Of a stretch of 64,000 bases of DNA, positions 28,419 through 35,774 are shown piece by piece. Position 1 is the stretch's first letter. Each line of letters begins with the position of its first letter. The stretch is taken from IMG/VR virus record IMGVR_UViG_3300023175_000005, positions 62,001 through 126,000 of that record. The stretch is one strand, 5' to 3'. Below the pieces are notes generated by a model. It was not told the origin of the DNA. It saw only the letters and a list, made by a program, of their open reading frames with translations, and searched no databases. The translations under genes and the position numbers were made by a program.

Positions 28419-30149
28419 TTATGCTGTTGCTTGTGGAGATGGCTCAGCAGGGTTTTCTTCACCGCCAATTACACTTCCATCATCGCCCCCAATAGCATCA
28501 TCTCCTGTTAGTTCTTCGCCTTGTGCGCCTTCAATATCTCCTGCAATATCAGAACCAGTAATGCCTGCGCCTCTCATTTGTGCAGAAGCATCTTGTTCCT
28601 GTGCTGCAAAGAATTCATCATTTTCTTCCATCCATAAACGTTCATTTTCTTTAACTTCTTCTTCTGATAGTCCAAGGAAACGTTTCAAGGCAAAACGATT
28701 TGATATAAACGGAATTTGTTGCATCTGTGCAAATGTTGAAATTCTATTGTTATCAAGTTCTGCTTGTCTATAACTTGCAAAGTTTTGTGGAGGTTGTAAA
28801 ACAAGATCAAACATGCTTACATCTATGTTTACACCCTTTTTGCTTAGATAAAGTTTAAATTCTTGATTAAATTTGTCTGTAAGTAATTTTTGTAAACGTT
28901 CACAGTAATTGTTAAAACGTAGTTCTTGAATGTATGCTGTACCTACTCGTCCATCATTGTACTGTGAATTGCTGTCATCAGCGCCTGTGGGTAGATAAGA
29001 AGAAGGTATGCGTAAACCACGAACTAACTTGTTAGTAAAATACCTAAGATCATCAATCTCTCCTAAGTTAGTGCCACCTGGTAGCGTTTCAACTTTACTG
29101 CCGCGGCCTTCAGCAGTTTGTGGAAAGAAGTAGTCTTCGTTGATTGACAGTGGATTATAACTTGAGTCTATAACATTTTGGCCACCACCTGTCTTGGATG
29201 GGATACGTCTTTGATGTATTTCCGTTTTAACACGCTCCACAAACTGCATAGCAAGGTGTGAAGGCATGTTGCCCACATCAACGTAGAATACTCTGCGCTC
29301 TGGCGCACGTTGGACACGATAGATAATAATCGCATCTTCAAGCAGTTCTTTCTGCTTGTATACTTTAAAAATTGTTTCTAATAGACTGTTACCAAACGGA
29401 TAGTTGTTATCTAGCCCTTCGCTCATTGATAGATGAACAACATGTTCTGCATCGATTGCAGTTTCATTTGCATCTTGACTCCAACGGCTTGTGCTTTGAT
29501 CAGGAGTTCTACCTGTCATATATTTGTTGTCAAGTGTTTGGTATCCAGGATTGTTACCGCCTGGACCGTAAACTTGATTTGTATTGATTTTTGTTGCACT
29601 TAATCCTTCAAAGGCAATGTTAAGATCTTTTACAATATATTGCTCAGGACGTTTGCCTTCCGATTCGTTAACGATAATTTTTGTTACATTAGCAGGATCT
29701 ACATGATACCATTTTTGTGTTTCAGGATCTCTAATAAAAAATTGGTCGCCAAACTTAAATGCATTTCTTATAACACGGAACATGCGTTTTTCAAATTCTT
29801 GTATCTTGCACCATTGTTTTAGATACTGACCAAGAATTTGTACTTCGCTTTTTGTTGCACCTTTGTTAAACTCAATATTAAAAGGTGTGTTGTTTTGTTT
29901 GTTCTTTTGTGTGCAAAATTCTGCTAGGATGTCTAGTGCAGCATTAACTTCAGAGTCATTATCCATTGTGTTATATTGACCATAACGCTCAACACGATTT
30001 GGTGATCCGACATAAACATCAGGAAGGTGAGATGAATAGTTTGCTGCTGCTGGTCCCATTCCTTGACCTTGTGTAAAACTAAATGGACTGAAGTTACCGG
30101 TAGGATTGGCACTCGTTGCTACTGGTGTAAAATATTTTTTCCAACTCAT
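28419..30149 (-). CDS. gp20: Portal vertex protein
   Basis: LLEDAIIIYRVQRAPERRVFYVDVGNMP, EDYFFPQTAEGRGSKVETLPGG and ELRF motifs. Confidence 0.97.
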   Translation of the reverse strand: MSWKKYFTPVATSANPTGNFSPFSFTQGQGMGPAAANYSSHLPDVYVGSPNRVERYGQYNTMDNDSEVNAALDILAEFCTQKNKQNNTPFNIEFNKGATKSEVQILGQYLKQWCKIQEFEKRMFRVIRNAFKFGDQFFIRDPETQKWYHVDPANVTKIIVNESEGKRPEQYIVKDLNIAFEGLSATKINTNQVYGPGGNNPGYQTLDNKYMTGRTPDQSTSRWSQDANETAIDAEHVVHLSMSEGLDNNYPFGNSLLETIFKVYKQKELLEDAIIIYRVQRAPERRVFYVDVGNMPSHLAMQFVERVKTEIHQRRIPSKTGGGQNVIDSSYNPLSINEDYFFPQTAEGRGSKVETLPGGTNLGEIDDLRYFTNKLVRGLRIPSSYLPTGADDSNSQYNDGRVGTAYIQELRFNNYCERLQKLLTDKFNQEFKLYLSKKGVNIDVSMFDLVLQPPQNFASYRQAELDNNRISTFAQMQQIPFISNRFALKRFLGLSEEEVKENERLWMEENDEFFAAQEQDASAQMRGAGITGSDIAGDIEGAQGEELTGDDAIGGDDGSVIGGEENPAEPSPQATA

Positions 30150-33100
30150 CTACCTAAACTCCTATACAGGTTAGTACTGCCTTTTGTATTTCTTGCAATG
30201 CCTTTTTCGACACTTAGCCCTTCACTTAGCAAATGCACAGCCATTTTCATATTGTTATTTAACTGATCTATCTTCTGAATTAACTGAGTCTGGTCCGTAC
30301 TTGAACCTTGCCTTTCGTAGAACGCATCTAGAAGTTGTCCTGCTTCTGTATTCCTAGGCACAACTGCTTCATTACCGTGCAATATTGCATGAGTTCCTCT
30401 ACCAAAATCTCGGAACCCATTTGTTCCAGTGGCAAATTCAGGAAAGGAAGGACTATTAGGATAAAGTGCCATGATACTCTGACGTAATGCATCAGGATCG
30501 GTCATAAGAGCATCTAAATTAAGTGCGTCTGAGACAGGATCAGTTACTAAGTTTAAAAATTTAGCAAAATTTCCAGAAATAACACTGCCATTGTCAATTG
30601 ATCGTTGAACTTGTTCTGCACGTATAGTTTGTATTAAACTTTGTAATTCGTTCTTGTCAAGTTGTTCGCCTGACATAAAGCGAGTCATAGCATCATCACG
30701 TTGCGTGTCTGTCATCTTAGCACCTGGGATAAATGACTTTGCATATTGACCTAAAGATTTTAGAATTTGCATCATGCCTGCTTCAATTGAGATTGTCATC
30801 TCTTGAATTAATCTATCAATATAACTAGCAAAATCTTCGGTAGCCTCCATGCCTAGTAAATCTCTTACAGCGTTAATTTGGGTATTAATAAATGTTTGCA
30901 TTTTGGTTTGTAAATCAGTAAGTGTTGTGTTCATCCACTCTTGAAACGTTTGGCCCCCTGGTGCAAATCCAAATGTATCTGCTATTGTATCCATTACAGT
31001 AATGATAGTGTTATTAATAGCATTCATGGTATTTGAAATACTTGTCCAAGTACTGTCAAACCATTCACGAAGTGTTTGTCCTTGTCCAAAACCTAGTGCA
31101 TCTCTAAAGTAATTAACAGTACTATTCATTGTCGTTGTTACAGTGTCTATCATATTACTTATAGTTGCTAACGTATTGTCAAACCATTGTGTTAGACTTG
31201 TTTGGCCGCTTGTGCCTATAAATCCCTTTATATCGTTGTACAATGTAGTTATTTTAGATAATATACCGTCTGGACCGTTAAATGCATTCTCAATTGCTGT
31301 TACTTGAGTAGTAACAAATACCTTTATATCGTCGTACAATGTAGTTACTTTAGATAACACACCGTCTGGACCGTTAAATGCATTCTGAATTGCTGTTAAT
31401 TGAGTAGTAAGCCAATCTGATACTGTTGTACCTTGTGGCATTCCTAGTATTTTAGATAAATGGGTATCAACAGTGTTAAACGCATTTGTTATACTATCAG
31501 TAATTGCTTTTCCAAATTCAGTACCCGAAAAGAAGCCTGCTATGCTTTGTTTGATACTATCAAACATACCACCACTTCTTGACTGTTCTCCATTTGGCCC
31601 TTGCTGAAGTTCTCCAAATGCAAAATCCATTATATTTGCAAACGTGTCTCTAAGAAGTGTTTTAAGTCCTTCAATAATTGTTAACTTACCGTCTTGATCT
31701 GTAAAAATACTTTCTAAATAATTAGCAAACTCTACAAGTTTTTCTTGAAGGTATCCTAATGCATCTCTTGCTTCTCCTGAATTTAAAAAATCGTTAAATC
31801 TTCTCAACCCTCTAGTAACAAATCCTTGTGGACCAAAAATTGCATTTAAAAAATCTTTTACAGTGTTTGTTACTGTGCTAAGACCGCCTGCTGCACCTGG
31901 AGAAAAGAAATTTTTCAAAGCGTCTCCAAACTCTCCAAACACTTCAAGTAATCCGCCTCTGCCGTCAGTACCGTCTACAATTTCAAAGAATGCCCTAACA
32001 ACTGATTTTCTCACGTCAGTTATTGCTTGTTCAAAGTTTCCTAGTGCAGATGTTAATCTATTCCTGCGTCCCTGTTCTTCTTCACTAAGTCCTGCATCTA
32101 TTCCTCTGATACTGTTGAATTGGTATGCATAGTCTGCAACACTTGCAAGTGCAGCAACAACACCGTTACTACTGTTTTGCATTGATGTAAGTTGTGCAGG
32201 GCCATACTGTTGCGAAAATCTTTCTAGCGTAGGACCAAATCTGTTTTGCAAAGTTGAAATAACATCAGATAGTTCTTCTTCACCTGTAAAAACTCGTTGC
32301 ATATAAGTTTCAATGCCAGGCATAGCCTGTACTAAAGCCTTGCCTAAATCAGTTTGTGCAACGCCATCCATTAGGTCTTGGAAGCCATCACTGAAACCCG
32401 GAAGTCTTGTGTCAAAGAACGTCAACGCACCACGCAAGTTGTTTCGTTCATTTTCATTTAATCGATTCAACTGATTTCTAATTCTAGCTTCAGTCATTTG
32501 CTGTGCCATTCTATCAGCAAGTTGTCTGCGTTCTTCACCTGTTAGTTTTGCTAGTCTATCAAGTTGTAAAATATAATTTGCTGCACTTGCTTGTGTTTGT
32601 CCATCAAATCTCAGTGCTTGTGACTGTCTCATTCTTTCGTTTGATAGAAAATCAATAAGTCCTTCGTTAACATCTTCAATAGTGAAACCCATTGCAAAGA
32701 ATTGTCTACCTAATCCTGTTCTAAACTCTTGACTGAATGTTCCAAGAAGTTTTGCACCGTTAGTTACAGTGCCTCCAAAAAACGCTAGATTTGCAGCATT
32801 GTCTCTTACCATTTGTGCAAAATCATCAAGACTCATTGATGCTTCTGCACTTATTTTCATCATTTCAAAAATACTATTTTCAAAACTTGCACCTACTGAT
32901 GCTAAACTTCTAAATTGATCAACTGTGTGATCCAAGTAGCGTGTAAGTCTTGTTACAACATTTGTACTTCCAAAGATTGCTTCAGCAAAGTCACTAGCCC
33001 GTGTGCCTCCAAACGCAAGTTCTTTAGCAAAACCTTTAAGGCCTTTGCCTGCTGCTTCTGCTGCTTTGCCTAACTTACTGACTTTGTCAGTGCCATCTTT

Positions 33101-33265
33101 TTGTGCTTTATTATAATTTTCTTGTATACGTGTTGCTGTATCAGGGCCGCCACCGCCACCACGTCTTTCAGTTGCTGCTAATAAAGCCTGTAAGGTGGCT
33201 TCACTTGCTACGCCGTCTCTTGGACGGGGGCCGCCTACATTACTAATTTCTACATCTTCTGCCAA
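30146..33265 (-). CDS. Tape measure protein (1039 aa, TTG start)
   Basis: Long helical Ala/Gly/Thr-rich protein with periodic aromatic residues; C-terminal FATGT...LHGNEAVVP motif; divergent from gp26. Confidence 0.75.
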   Translation of the reverse strand: MAEDVEISNVGGPRPRDGVASEATLQALLAATERRGGGGGPDTATRIQENYNKAQKDGTDKVSKLGKAAEAAGKGLKGFAKELAFGGTRASDFAEAIFGSTNVVTRLTRYLDHTVDQFRSLASVGASFENSIFEMMKISAEASMSLDDFAQMVRDNAANLAFFGGTVTNGAKLLGTFSQEFRTGLGRQFFAMGFTIEDVNEGLIDFLSNERMRQSQALRFDGQTQASAANYILQLDRLAKLTGEERRQLADRMAQQMTEARIRNQLNRLNENERNNLRGALTFFDTRLPGFSDGFQDLMDGVAQTDLGKALVQAMPGIETYMQRVFTGEEELSDVISTLQNRFGPTLERFSQQYGPAQLTSMQNSSNGVVAALASVADYAYQFNSIRGIDAGLSEEEQGRRNRLTSALGNFEQAITDVRKSVVRAFFEIVDGTDGRGGLLEVFGEFGDALKNFFSPGAAGGLSTVTNTVKDFLNAIFGPQGFVTRGLRRFNDFLNSGEARDALGYLQEKLVEFANYLESIFTDQDGKLTIIEGLKTLLRDTFANIMDFAFGELQQGPNGEQSRSGGMFDSIKQSIAGFFSGTEFGKAITDSITNAFNTVDTHLSKILGMPQGTTVSDWLTTQLTAIQNAFNGPDGVLSKVTTLYDDIKVFVTTQVTAIENAFNGPDGILSKITTLYNDIKGFIGTSGQTSLTQWFDNTLATISNMIDTVTTTMNSTVNYFRDALGFGQGQTLREWFDSTWTSISNTMNAINNTIITVMDTIADTFGFAPGGQTFQEWMNTTLTDLQTKMQTFINTQINAVRDLLGMEATEDFASYIDRLIQEMTISIEAGMMQILKSLGQYAKSFIPGAKMTDTQRDDAMTRFMSGEQLDKNELQSLIQTIRAEQVQRSIDNGSVISGNFAKFLNLVTDPVSDALNLDALMTDPDALRQSIMALYPNSPSFPEFATGTNGFRDFGRGTHAILHGNEAVVPRNTEAGQLLDAFYERQGSSTDQTQLIQKIDQLNNNMKMAVHLLSEGLSVEKGIARNTKGSTNLYRSLGR

Positions 33266-33284: not shown

Positions 33285-33347
33285 TGCGCACATTATATTA
33301 ATTCATATATATACGTGTAGTATTTATCCGGAGAAAAAATACATGCA
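33285..33347. promoter_or_regulatory. Overlapping late promoters on opposite strands for gp26 (+) and the tape measure gene (-)
   Basis: Plus: TGCGCAC-ATT...TATATA (33285/33306). Minus: TGCATGT-ATT...TAAATA (33347/33326). Confidence 0.55.
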
Positions 33348-34200
33348 GACAGCAACAGCAAACCCGCTGTCTAAACATTTTAGACAGCCTAAATTATATA
33401 TCAAATTACCTAGTGGTGGAAATTTTTATCGTCCTGGTAGTCTTGTGCCTGAGCAAACGGGTGAATACCCTGTGTATGCTATGACAGCAAAGGATGAACT
33501 TATGTTCAAAACTCCTGATGCTTTGTTAAACGGCCAAAGCACAGTAAACGTAATTCAAAGTTGTATGCCCAATATCAAAGATGGTTGGTCAATACCTAGC
33601 ATCGACATTGATGCTATATTAATTGCAATTAGAATCGCAACCTATGGCGAAGTAATGGAACTAGGTGTTAACATCAAAGAAATAGATGAAGAAAGATCAT
33701 TTGAACTTGATTTGCGCACAGTTCTTGATGGACTAATTGCAAGACAGTATGATAATGTTTTTCAAATCGGCGACTTTACTTTTGAAATTGCGCCGATGGT
33801 GTACAAAAAGTTTACAGAAATTGCTTTAAAAACATTTGAAGAACAACGTTTGTTTAGAATTGTTAACGACGATAACATGAGCGAAACAGATAAAATTACT
33901 CAGTTTAATGAAGCATTTGTTAGAGTTACCGAACTTAACATTAGTAATATTCTAAACAGTATTATGTCAATACAGTTTCAGGATGAAGAACCTGTTACTA
34001 ACAGAGATCATATTATAGAATTTTTTGAAAACGCCGACAAAGACATTTACACTTCTCTTATAGTTCATTTAGATGAACAAAGAGAAAAGTTTGCAATACC
34101 GCCATTCAAGGCACGTCTAAGTCCAGCGGATATCGAAAGAGGAGCACCAGAAACTATTGATGTTCCGATTACTTTCGATCAATCAAATTTTTTCGCCTAA
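33343..34200 (+). CDS. gp26: Baseplate hub assembly chaperone, gp26-like (true start probably ATG 33343)
   Basis: IKLPSGG...VYAMTAKDEL...DIDAILIAIRIATYGE motifs; GGAG RBS before 33343; ends NFFA. Confidence 0.8.
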   Translation: MQTATANPLSKHFRQPKLYIKLPSGGNFYRPGSLVPEQTGEYPVYAMTAKDELMFKTPDALLNGQSTVNVIQSCMPNIKDGWSIPSIDIDAILIAIRIATYGEVMELGVNIKEIDEERSFELDLRTVLDGLIARQYDNVFQIGDFTFEIAPMVYKKFTEIALKTFEEQRLFRIVNDDNMSETDKITQFNEAFVRVTELNISNILNSIMSIQFQDEEPVTNRDHIIEFFENADKDIYTSLIVHLDEQREKFAIPPFKARLSPADIERGAPETIDVPITFDQSNFFA

Positions 34201-34250
34201 GGATCTCAGCTCTGTCCTTAGAGGACATTCTTAAACAAGTTGAGATCCTT
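34185..34250 (+). other. Putative -1 programmed ribosomal frameshift signal
   Basis: In-phase slippery heptamers A-AAT-TTT (34185-34191) and T-TTT-TTC (34188-34194), then a 13-bp stem 34199-34211/34238-34250. Confidence 0.75.
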
Positions 34251-34424
34251 GACAACGAATCAAAACAAATAAAATATGATCTCTACAAATTGTCTTGGTA
34301 CATGCGTGGAGGTGTTTCGGTGTCAGAACTTTACGAGATGAGTGTTGAGGACAGAGAAATCCTAGCAGGTATAGTAAAAGAAAATTTAGAAACTAGTAAA
34401 AAGACAGGACAGCCGTTTTGGTAA
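34194..34424 (+). CDS. gp51: gp51-like baseplate hub chaperone domain, reached by a -1 frameshift from gp26
   Basis: Open -1 frame RLRISALSLEDILKQVEILDNESKQIKYDLYKLSWYMRGGVSVSELYEMSVEDREILAGIVKENLETSKKTGQPFW*; no start codon at its 5' end. Confidence 0.7.
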   Translation, partial: RLRISALSLEDILKQVEILDNESKQIKYDLYKLSWYMRGGVSVSELYEMSVEDREILAGIVKENLETSKKTGQPFW

Positions 34425-34943
34425 TTAAGAAGGCTGTGAAACTTTGTAGCCTTTTTTCTTAAGCATTGCAATTGCTGTTTTTTCTTCAGGTGAAATTCTT
34501 GATGTTGCCCACTGTGGTGTAGCATCCGGTGATGCAAACTTACTACGTTTCTTAGGATCACCAGCACCAGATCTTTGAAAGCCTTGCTGTGTTACTTTCT
34601 TTAAAATCTCATCTACTTCAGGATTGCTTAGTGGTTCATTTTCATCTCTACCACCTGCTTCTCTTGACTTACCTAAAATCATATCAACATCAGTAGTAGG
34701 TAAACCTTTTTGTCTTAGAAAACCCTTGAGTTGATCAGGTTCTAGTTTTCCTTTTTTAATGCCACTACCTGCCATCCATACACTTAGATCTTTTTTGGTT
34801 TGGTTTGCATCTTTGCCTACATCAAGTTTTGCTTTTGCAGTTTTACTGCCTAATTTACTCATAGCACCAAGTCCTGCTCTTTTTAGCAATCCCATTGGTT
34901 TTTCACTTACGTTATCTTCACTAATAATCTCAAATACTTTCAT
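34425..34943 (-). CDS. Basic protein, probable internal head protein
   Basis: MKVFEIISE N-terminus resembles a capsid-targeting/gp21-cleavage leader; Lys-rich; TAAATA boxes upstream. Confidence 0.55.
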   Translation of the reverse strand: MKVFEIISEDNVSEKPMGLLKRAGLGAMSKLGSKTAKAKLDVGKDANQTKKDLSVWMAGSGIKKGKLEPDQLKGFLRQKGLPTTDVDMILGKSREAGGRDENEPLSNPEVDEILKKVTQQGFQRSGAGDPKKRSKFASPDATPQWATSRISPEEKTAIAMLKKKGYKVSQPS

Positions 34944-35065: not shown

Positions 35066-35362
35066 TAGTTTCATGTAGATTAATTAGTCAGACGGAACCT
35101 TGCAGCGGTTCCATCCTCCTCGAGCTTCATGTGAGTTGCATAGCCGAGACTTGGAAGTAGGTATTTGACTTTGCTACTGGGCTCTAACCTTTCCCAACCT
35201 ACGTCGACATCACGCAAAATGCGCTATCCCCCGCTTCGTTCCTAGTGCTAAGGGGTTTTCGTAGCATACAGCCTGTGGGACTTCACCAGTGTCTGATCAC
35301 GTGGTTACGTGAAGCTCAAGGTGGATCGAACAATTCCGATCAAACAGTGTCCTGATGTGCCT
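35066..35362 (-). ncRNA. Putative ~290-nt structured RNA immediately 3' of the GIY-YIG gene
   Basis: GC-rich island; long-range helix UCCACCUUGAGCUUCA/UGAAGCUCGAGGAGGA; several hairpins; H-type pseudoknot; G-U pairs favour the minus strand. Confidence 0.6.
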
Positions 35363-35774
35363 TTAAATTTTCTCTAAGTATTTTTGAACCACCAACTCGA
35401 ACGTTTATAATACCATTATAGTATTCATCTGTTTCTAAAACTCTACGTTCAAATTGTTCTCGTGCCTCTAAATATGACATTTCGCCTCTAGATTTACAAA
35501 AATAAAGTATTTCTCTTGTAAACTTGTTTTCGCCTAATTTTTCTACGTCTGCTATTAGTTTATCTGACGATCCCCAATAGTCTCGCCAATCTGATTCCTT
35601 GTAGCCTCGTCTTTTATTTTTTTTGCCTTTAAGCGGTGGTTTGGTTGTTTTAAACTTTGCTAGTTTTTTGCCTACGTATTTGCGATTGTCCGTTAAATTA
35701 GTAATAAGGTAAACAAACCCTTCGTACTCGTTTGGTATTTCTGTTACTTCTTTACCTTGATATATCCAATTCAT
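35340..35774 (-). CDS. Stand-alone GIY-YIG endonuclease (144 aa)
   Basis: GFVYLITN...KYVGKK, YWGSS, catalytic Glu in SYLEAREQ, and YYN motifs. Confidence 0.85.
   Translation of the reverse strand: MNWIYQGKEVTEIPNEYEGFVYLITNLTDNRKYVGKKLAKFKTTKPPLKGKKNKRRGYKESDWRDYWGSSDKLIADVEKLGENKFTREILYFCKSRGEMSYLEAREQFERRVLETDEYYNGIINVRVGGSKILRENLKAHQDTV

Follow-up and report, generated by a model that had tools for sequence, protein, structure and literature searches.

A conserved slippery site at the end of a gp26-like hub-chaperone gene suggests programmed -1 frameshifting in a giant T4-related phage

We examined a gp26-like locus in a 64,000-nt stretch (hereafter the window) of IMG/VR virus record IMGVR_UViG_3300023175_000005, a giant T4-related phage. 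The locus consists of a gp26-like gene, a slippery sequence just before its stop codon, a predicted stem-loop and an open -1 frame, and lies next to a tape-measure-like gene on the opposite strand. The features, in window coordinates, are as follows.

30146..33265, minus strand: tape-measure-like gene (1039 aa), transcribed divergently from the gp26-like gene.
33329..33332, plus strand: Shine-Dalgarno-like GGAG, 10 nt upstream of the ATG at 33343.
33343..34200, plus strand: gp26-like baseplate-hub assembly gene in the 0 frame, with a short product of 285 aa and its stop at 34198-34200.
34185..34191, plus strand: first in-phase heptamer, A_AAT_TTT, not conserved.
34188..34194, plus strand: conserved slippery heptamer T_TTT_TTC, the proposed -1 slip site.
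34194..34424, plus strand: -1-frame tail of 76 codons plus stop, predicted to fold as a small helical bundle.
34198..34251, plus strand: predicted stimulatory stem-loop, with an outer 14-bp stem (34198-34211 / 34238-34251) and an inner 6-bp hairpin (34213-34218 / 34222-34227).
34428..34458, plus strand: hairpin plus T-run (AAGGCT, 12 nt, AGCCTTTTTT) directly after the tail stop, a possible terminator closing the unit.

The gp26-like gene matched PF12322 (T4_baseplate) at 28.9 bits against a cut-off of 24.5 and phrog_150 ('baseplate hub') at 4.9e-9. A search of the whole 256.6-kb virus record found no other PF12322 gene, this one scoring 29.2 bits. Homologue alignments begin at the NPL motif just after the ATG at 33343, which is therefore the true start, rather than the ORF-opening ATG at 33265. 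The AlphaFold model of the protein has a pLDDT of 86. The adjacent minus-strand gene matched phrog_167 (4.3e-11) and phrog_4200 (2.6e-9), both 'tail length tape measure protein'. The hairpin and T-run after the tail stop were not reported by a terminator scan, which allows loops of 8 nt or fewer, and overlap the 3' end of the minus-strand ORF 34425-34943.

The 0-frame ORF ends TCA AAT TTT TTC GCC TAA. The -1 frame is open from 34161 to 34424 and, read from CGC at 34194, gives 76 codons. Its first possible start codon is TTG at 34290, 32 codons into the conserved peptide, and its first ATG is at 34302. The predicted junction peptide is ..DQSNFF|RLR, whichever heptamer is used. A first-pass annotation made from the sequence alone had proposed that two overlapping in-phase heptamers and a 13-bp stem (34199-34211 / 34238-34250) fuse gp26 to a gp51-like tail by -1 frameshifting, and every element it described is present. 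Two corrections were needed. Only the second heptamer is conserved, as relatives have AAT, AGT, GAT, TCT or GCT before TTT TTC, and the first was accordingly rejected as the functional site. The tape-measure-like gene, which the annotation described as abutting the pair, is divergent from it.

The slip site was conserved. T_TTT_TTC was invariant and in phase in 79/79 IMG/VR loci of the window clade, and in 121/121 distinct sequences when two clades were considered. The preceding amino acid varies (N, S, D, A) but its codon always ends in T. In the same genes only 74% of Phe codons are TTT, and 39-75% of such codons end in T. All 13 clusters at 50% amino acid identity and all 22 clusters at 60% keep a slippery site. 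With a neutral expectation of about 0.44 per lineage, this gives roughly 1e-5 for 13 clusters and 1e-8 for 22. The heptamer is also present in eight cultured phages (Atu_ph07, Phosso, RaK2, PA5oct, S-PM2, KVP40, Aeh1 and PhiW-14), with T_TTT_TTT in two more, and the site is followed by a 55-75-codon -1 ORF in these eight as well as in HTVC008M and phiM12.

Next, the coding potential of the -1 frame was assessed. The peptide is conserved from FFR onward, at 77-78 aa in all complete relatives, and codon-position entropy was 1.08/0.69/1.43 in the -1 frame, starting right after the heptamer. The 0-frame stop sits 2 or 5 codons after TTC, while the tail length stays fixed. No conserved start or Shine-Dalgarno sequence exists: the first ATG falls anywhere from tail codon 4 to 39, or is absent in one sequence, and only 1 of 49 has an SD-like motif.

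A stable RNA structure follows the site. In the window, ViennaRNA extended the 13-bp stem to 14 pairs, beginning 3-4 nt after the heptamer, with a fold energy of -24.7 kcal/mol (z = -4.71); 0 of 200 shuffles folded as well. No T-run follows this hairpin, and a role as terminator was rejected for that reason. RNAalifold on all 46 relatives found no single consensus structure, because the 3' arm differs between clades. Relatives keep the 5' arm and pair it with one of two alternative 3' arms, so each helix was counted separately: 71% and 74% of cells pair, against at most 55% in slid controls. A spacer of 3-4 nt is nevertheless short for a classical -1 stimulator, and a few relatives (L029, L032, RaK2, KVP40 and Aeh1) show no outstanding hairpin. 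Rfam gave no match. The 60 nt after the site fall in the most stable 10% of each gene's own windows in 72% of the window clade and 65% of the cyanophage clade.

We then compared the locus with phages in which short and long forms are separate genes. T4 gp26 and gp51 both match PF12322 end to end and are full-length paralogues, gp51 carrying the extra tail in frame. Twenty proteins of 319-351 aa likewise carry the window-type tail in frame at their C-terminus. The model of one such protein has a pLDDT of 89.5, with the tail as helices 271-345, and BFVD fold matches to 'baseplate hub assembly protein, T4-like' were found at E 1.6e-14 for the fused homologue. The junctions of these proteins are non-slippery (TTC AGA), and the two contigs examined each hold a second, short PF12322 gene just upstream. 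Short forms in two-gene phages encode the FF position as GAG TTC TTT (T4), GAC TTC TTT (the relative L190) or F-L (RB49, RB43). Phages with both genes (T4, RB49, RB43 and two metagenomic contigs) have mostly lost the slippery codons. By contrast, single-gene genomes include the window's own record, S-PM2, HTVC008M, phiM12, KVP40, Aeh1 and PhiW-14. In the tree, the T-even short and long forms make one clade beside frameshifting KVP40/Aeh1, whilst the metagenomic short forms nest inside the window clade.

Taken together, these comparisons make a programmed -1 ribosomal frameshift the most likely explanation, one in which we have high confidence although it is inferred from sequence and comparison without protein or ribosome data. 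Most ribosomes would stop at TAA 34198 and make the 285-aa short form. A fraction would slip back one base on U_UUU_UUC (34188-34194), where both Phe-tRNAs can re-pair with UUU and the downstream hairpin probably pauses the ribosome, and continue in the -1 frame to 34421. The result would be a 360-aa long form comprising residues 1-284 plus a 76-aa tail, predicted to be helical. In terms of T4, the short form corresponds to gp26 and the trans-frame form to gp51, rather than gp51 to the tail alone. The link between the window's tail and gp51 rests mainly on position and on intermediate phages. The window's own tail resembles that of gp51 only weakly, sharing an S..E...M...ER motif at the same position, and profile-profile comparison with hhalign gave P 0.028 with small alignments and P 0.0024 (probability 12%) with 66 vs 53 sequences, which we treat as suggestive only. 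Direct BLASTP of the window protein and tail against T4 gp26 and gp51 found nothing, and the window tail gave only chance-level hits to Pfam and PHROGs. The tails of S-PM2 and KVP40, however, hit phrog_634 (gp51), and the S-PM2 tail also hits the C-terminus of phrog_150.

Transcriptional slippage is an unlikely alternative, in which RNA polymerase would add one U in the T6 run and produce a subpopulation of T7 mRNAs with the tail in frame. The site is a homopolymer, HTVC008M has a T9 run and phiM12 a T7 run, and in RM378 a tail-like ORF lies in the +1 frame after a T7 run, which ribosomal -1 slippage cannot reach. However, six Ts would be short for efficient slippage by bacterial RNA polymerase, which usually seems to need 8-9 or more. 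The second Phe codon is never TTT in the 121 genes, so the run is never lengthened, albeit the -1-frame Arg codon also constrains that base. A hairpin positioned 3-7 nt downstream is the signature of ribosomal frameshifting, and it is enriched in two clades. Contigs from RNA libraries carry T6, but these are consensus only and would not show a minority form.

It is similarly unlikely that the tail is a separate small protein made by its own initiation, or by termination-reinitiation at the gp26 stop. The S-PM2 and KVP40 records annotate 57- and 55-aa 'baseplate hub assembly catalyst' ORFs starting at an ATG just after or overlapping the gp26 stop, Atu_ph07, Phosso and the relatives L009-L011 have ATGA overlaps, and 30 of 59 cyanophage-clade sequences have an ATG at tail codon 6. 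A separately initiated tail peptide is possible in those phages. In the window, however, there is no ATG, GTG or TTG for 32 codons after the heptamer and no SD, yet those codons are conserved as protein. Where the Met of WYMRG is Phe (relatives L033, L034 and L044), that ATG is missing. Independent initiation does not explain the nucleotide-level invariance of the heptamer, including the silent T before it, nor why the heptamer decays where the tail is fused in frame. T4 gp51 and the 20 metagenomic proteins also show that the tail works when covalently attached.

Although the split falls in a T6 run, a typical error site, and in-frame fused versions exist elsewhere, a sequencing artefact or decaying gene is effectively refuted: independent DNA and RNA-library contigs from four runs show no insertion or deletion across the run, the same split, phase and tail length occur in 79 IMG/VR loci, 43 or more cyanophage contigs and 10 cultured phages sequenced by different methods, and the in-frame versions have a different junction, with a single F encoded by TTC AGA and not a T7 run.

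The function of the two forms is less certain. From the T4 literature and context, both may act as non-structural chaperones of central-hub and tape-measure assembly, with the scarce long form matching the 'catalytic' gp51. T4 gp26 and gp51 are listed as hub assembly chaperones, and gp51 is required but absent from the particle (PMC3004832). We consider a G/GT-like chaperone role about as likely as not. Somewhat more likely than not, but still speculative, is that the frameshift is ancestral to the whole T4 superfamily (cyanophages, pelagiphages, schizo-T4 vibriophages and RaK2-, Atu_ph07- and PA5oct-type jumbo phages). T4 genes 26 and 51 would then be a later duplication that hard-wired the two decoding products, independently at least twice. 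This would make gp26/gp51 a non-homologous, convergent counterpart of lambda G/GT, would explain why gp51 acts 'catalytically', and would extend the rule that long-tailed phages need a fixed-ratio short/long chaperone pair to the one major group thought to lack it.

Programmed frameshifting in tail-chaperone genes is a hallmark of long-tailed phages, to which T4 and its relatives have apparently been the conspicuous exception, and we found no prior description of this frameshift in literature searches that did not cover subscription journals. A conserved recoding site would give the long-enigmatic gp26 and gp51 a rationale as one protein in two lengths, and comparison of frameshift with gene-duplication lineages offers a natural experiment on why a fixed short:long ratio matters. 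It would also correct the annotation of the region across the T4-related genomes carrying the site. In line with the expectation of the first-pass annotation that gene callers would mis-annotate the locus, called starts of the tail ORF are scattered over profile positions 1 to 39, and GenBank records call the tail a separate 55-57-aa 'gp51', a 'hypothetical protein', or nothing at all.

The first-pass annotation had inferred that gp26/gp51 are the T4-family counterparts of lambda G/T, but this likeness is an analogy of expression and presumed role. As in lambda G/GT and the P2 E / E+E' equivalents (Xu, Hendrix and Duda 2004), a -1 slip on an X_XXY_YYZ heptamer a few codons before the stop would yield an abundant short protein and a rarer C-terminally extended one, and gene callers routinely miss the extension. 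However, we found no sequence or fold similarity to known tail assembly chaperones. The only Pfam hit was PF12322, PDB sequence searches were empty, Foldseek gave a best E of 0.12 against PDB and no informative match among Swiss-Prot models, and a wide VIA-align search gave a best Z of 5.9, on the small helical tail only. The protein is also 3-4 times larger than G. In the window the gene is divergent from the adjacent tape-measure-like gene rather than directly upstream of it, and RaK2 and PA5oct have the same layout of portal, tape-measure-sized structural gene and divergent gp26-like gene. In S-PM2, a 1167-aa gene with tail-lysozyme and tape-measure-like hits does follow co-directionally.

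T4 gp26 and gp51 belong to the same family as the window protein. An 11-phage alignment showed an invariant F and a nearly invariant second F ending the shared domain, and the gp51 tail shares position and length class with the -1 tails. Gene 26 is divergent from the 51-27-28-29 (tape measure) cluster in T4, as the gp26-like gene is here. T4, RB49 and RB43 encode the two forms as two genes, whilst the window most likely encodes both in one gene through recoding. The 'gp51 baseplate hub assembly catalyst' mini-ORFs annotated in KVP40, S-PM2 and other T4-like cyanophages (phrog_634) are the same genetic element, the -1 tail directly after gp26, and the KVP40 annotators already noted its similarity to the last 40 aa of T4 gp51. 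Our evidence indicates these are the C-terminal part of a trans-frame gp26-gp51 fusion rather than free-standing proteins; the window-clade tail is longer (76-78 aa) and has no usable start. The E. coli dnaX tau/gamma frameshift would be a further parallel, as a bacterial-type -1 slip on a homopolymeric heptamer with a downstream hairpin that yields two forms with a common N-terminus, although in dnaX the frameshift product appears to be the shorter form, with a contribution from an upstream SD-like element.

The window lies in a 256.6-kb IMG/VR virus record with an estimated completeness of 72%, which is held by many salt-marsh metagenomes and metatranscriptomes. On the minus strand the local gene order is a gp23-like major head protein, a prohead protease, a portal and a tape-measure-like gene. 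A plus-strand, gp26-like gene starts divergently from the tape-measure gene, and is followed by an orphan ORF, a GIY-YIG endonuclease-like ORF and gp46/gp47 homologues. The features of the locus are as follows.

30146-33265 (minus strand): 1039-aa tape-measure-like gene.
33343 (plus strand): ATG of the gp26-like gene, with GGAG 10 nt upstream.
34161-34424: open -1 frame of the gp26-like gene, with no ATG, GTG or TTG before 34290.
34428-34458: hairpin plus T-run, which may be a terminator for the plus-strand unit.
34425-34943 (minus strand): 172-aa Lys-rich ORF convergent on the tail ORF, with no Pfam or PHROG match below E 0.1; its last codons overlap the hairpin plus T-run.
35340-35774 (minus strand): 144-aa ORF with GIY-YIG homing-endonuclease-like PHROG hits (phrog_7363, phrog_314), lying between an orphan ORF and the gp46 homologue; it may be a mobile insertion; its best hit, phrog_447, is labelled 'NAD synthetase', which may be a misnomer.

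The 285-aa product of the gp26-like gene matched PF12322 T4_baseplate above the curated cut-off and also matched phrog_150 'baseplate hub'. The nearest cultured relatives are jumbo myoviruses, namely Atu_ph07, Phosso, the RaK2, GAP32 and 121Q groups, and PA5oct, with identities of 26-36%. The description of the phage as T4-like in the first-pass annotation therefore holds only in the broad, superfamily sense.

We first checked the proposed frameshift site itself. The gene ends TCA AAT TTT TTC GCC TAA and, as noted in the first-pass annotation, two overlapping slippery heptamers are present in phase. The downstream stem it described is real and is the minimum-energy fold, at -24.7 kcal/mol (z -4.71), with no shuffle out of 200 folding as well. 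Contigs from two DNA runs and two RNA-library runs, one of the DNA runs being a 2024 marine sample from an unrelated study, covered the T-run without any insertion or deletion. A 309-nt contig from a related phage in the sample of run X1 matched the window only at the slip site (34183-34206) and at the WYMRG codons (34287-34309), with 80 diverged bases in between, giving two islands of nucleotide conservation.

Next, conservation of the site was examined in relatives. IMG/VR holds 80 loci encoding relatives at 43-100% identity, of which 79 include the end of the gene, and all 79 contain the in-phase T TTT TTC G. By contrast, the codons on either side differ between loci and the 0-frame stop sits 2 or 5 codons after TTC, whilst the -1 frame still runs on for 70-74 more codons in every complete locus. 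The -1 peptides are 77-78 aa long, align without gaps from FFR onward and share invariant F, F, R, K, W, R, G and N positions. Column entropy after the heptamer showed coding periodicity in the -1 frame (1.08/0.69/1.43 for codon positions 1/2/3), already visible in tail codons 4-15. The first ATG of the tail ORF lies anywhere from codon 4 to 39, or is absent, and only 1 of 49 has an SD-like motif. When a profile of the tails was searched against 1.84 billion proteins, gene callers were found to have started this ORF at profile positions 1, 4, 7, 11, 21, 35 or 39. This scatter is what one expects when no true start exists.

The RNA structure downstream of the heptamer was also compared across relatives. 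The 5' arm (AGGAUCUU-like) stays 3-7 nt after the heptamer but its partner differs by clade. In the window's clade it pairs with a 3' arm about 40 nt downstream, whilst in the more distant clade, and in the relative L023, it pairs with a 3' arm about 15 nt downstream. For each helix, 71-74% of cells pair, against 26-55% when the partner is slid by 1-3 columns, and double changes exceeded every shuffle. RNAalifold could not merge the two architectures. The 60 nt after the heptamer average -15.4 kcal/mol, against -8.1 for other windows of the same genes, and fall in the most stable tenth in 72% of sequences. An independent cyanophage set gave -13.2 against -8.1, and 65%.

The site is far older than this phage. 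Atu_ph07, Phosso, RaK2 and PA5oct have NNT TTT TTC followed by a 64-75-codon -1 ORF. Searches for PF12322 found a single gene in S-PM2, HTVC008M, phiM12, KVP40, Aeh1 and PhiW-14, and every one of those genes ends ..FF(x) before the stop. Each has in-phase T_TTT_TTC, or T_TTT_TTT in HTVC008M and phiM12, and a 55-62-codon -1 ORF. All 43 distinct cyanophage contigs in which the gene end was identified have the same site. Pooling two clades, 121 of 121 distinct genes read NNT TTT TTC, against a background usage in the same genes of 74% TTT for Phe and 39-75% T-ending codons for the residues involved. All 13 clusters at 50% identity and all 22 clusters at 60% identity are slippery.

We then asked what the tail is. 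In S-PM2 and KVP40 the -1 ORF is the 57- or 55-aa 'gp51 baseplate hub assembly catalyst' of the GenBank records, and the annotators of KVP40 noted its likeness to the C-terminal 40 aa of T4 gp51. The S-PM2 tail matched phrog_634 (gp51) and also positions 240-281 of phrog_150, the family of the gp26-like domain. T4 gp26 (208 aa) and gp51 (249 aa) both match PF12322 over the whole profile, after which gp51 continues for about 48 residues. That stretch aligns with the -1 tails through a Y-S-L..(I/L)..M.P.ER motif. The T4 record also annotates an internal in-frame start product, 26' (95 aa; L089:3803-4090), within gene 26, so T4 also makes more than one protein form from this family, by a different route. 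The window-clade tail shares the S..E...M...ER core, but only weakly in statistical terms (hhalign P 0.028 and 0.0024). The equivalence of the trans-frame product with gp51 therefore rests on its position after the homologous FF motif, on intermediate phages, and on genomes in which the tail is already fused in frame.

In line with this equivalence, twenty of the best 150 tail-profile hits are proteins of 319-351 aa with the tail at the C-terminus. Their junctions read ..SSSFRSRIL.. with a single Phe. The two encoding metagenomic contigs examined (L189 and L190) have non-slippery junction codons (TTC AGA) and a second PF12322 gene of 294 or 297 aa, without a tail, immediately upstream. RB49 and RB43, like T4, also have one short and one long gene. 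The codons at the FF position of the short form are listed below. The L189 short paralogue (L189:411-1295) still carries AAT TTT TTC near its end, although its -1 frame closes after two codons and a fused long paralogue follows it, and it looks like a relic of a former frameshift site.

Codons at the FF position of the short form where there are two genes.
Phage or contig; codons at the FF position; slippery or not
T4; GAG TTC TTT; no
L190; GAC TTC TTT; no
RB49; F-L (AGT TTC CTT); no
RB43; F-L (GCG TTT TTA); no
L189; AAT TTT TTC; apparent relic, its -1 frame closes at once

In a maximum-likelihood tree the six T-even-type short and long forms make one clade (support 87/88), which sits beside the frameshifting genes of KVP40 with Aeh1 and of S-PM2 with HTVC008M. 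The L189 and L190 short forms nest within the window clade whilst their long forms sit elsewhere in the jumbo group. Support is moderate, and PhiW-14 and phiM12 are long branches. Even so, the two-gene state appears to have arisen at least twice from a frameshifting single gene. The slippery heptamer is thus kept exactly where one gene must supply both forms.

To assess structure and possible function, AlphaFold models were made and were confident. The window's short form has pLDDT 86.2, and a natural fused homologue has pLDDT 89.5 and pTM 0.83, with its tail predicted to form helices between residues 271 and 345. The predicted fold recurs in 'baseplate hub' proteins of many myoviruses in BFVD, with E values down to 1.6e-14, but no counterpart was found among solved structures. 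That fits a protein that is absent from virion reconstructions. A 2010 review of T4 tail assembly lists gp26 and gp51 as hub assembly chaperones and states that gp51 is required but not present in the particle (PMC3004832). The hub contains the tape measure gp29. We therefore infer, from this literature and the gene context rather than from any binding data, that the short and long forms are assembly chaperones of the hub and tape-measure complex, and that the long form is the scarce one.

Among alternatives to ribosomal frameshifting, transcriptional slippage cannot be excluded from DNA alone. It is hinted at by Rhodothermus phage RM378 (NC_004735, 25929-26459 region), where the single PF12322 gene ends ..ESFFWNKL before its stop, at a T7 run (TCC TTT TTT TGG), and a tail-like ORF (..ISISELRVIAYMYTQQLEE..) continues for 67 codons in the +1 frame, not the -1 frame. 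This could be +1/-2 recoding, transcriptional slippage in a thermophile's phage, or a homopolymer error in an old record. HTVC008M and phiM12, with T9 and T7 runs, lack the otherwise conserved Arg as the first -1 codon, and their longer runs would favour transcriptional slippage as well. However, a T6 run is probably short for this mechanism, and the downstream hairpin points to the ribosome. Separate initiation of the tail is possible in phages with an ATG at or near the stop, but cannot explain the window or the nucleotide-level conservation. Sequencing error is excluded.

The first-pass annotation proposed that gp26/gp51 are the T4-family counterparts of the lambda G/GT pair. The -1 frameshift mechanism is standard, and the expression logic matches that of G/GT, as does the association with tail assembly next to the tape-measure gene. 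In S-PM2 the next co-directional gene (S-PM2p209, L105:5357-8860) encodes a 1167-aa protein that combines an ADP-ribosyltransferase-like N-terminal region (PF01129, 1.3e-5) with a tail-lysozyme domain and tape-measure-like PHROG hits. Database records annotate the tail separately or not at all, and full-text searches, which did not extend to subscription literature, found no description of this frameshift nor of gp26/gp51 as a recoding pair. The protein family is unrelated to G/GT, occurs in a phage group not known to use this device, and has a documented gene-duplication alternative. Membership in the G/GT chaperone families is not supported, as no sequence or fold similarity was found, the protein is much larger, and the tape-measure gene is divergent in this window, RaK2 and PA5oct.
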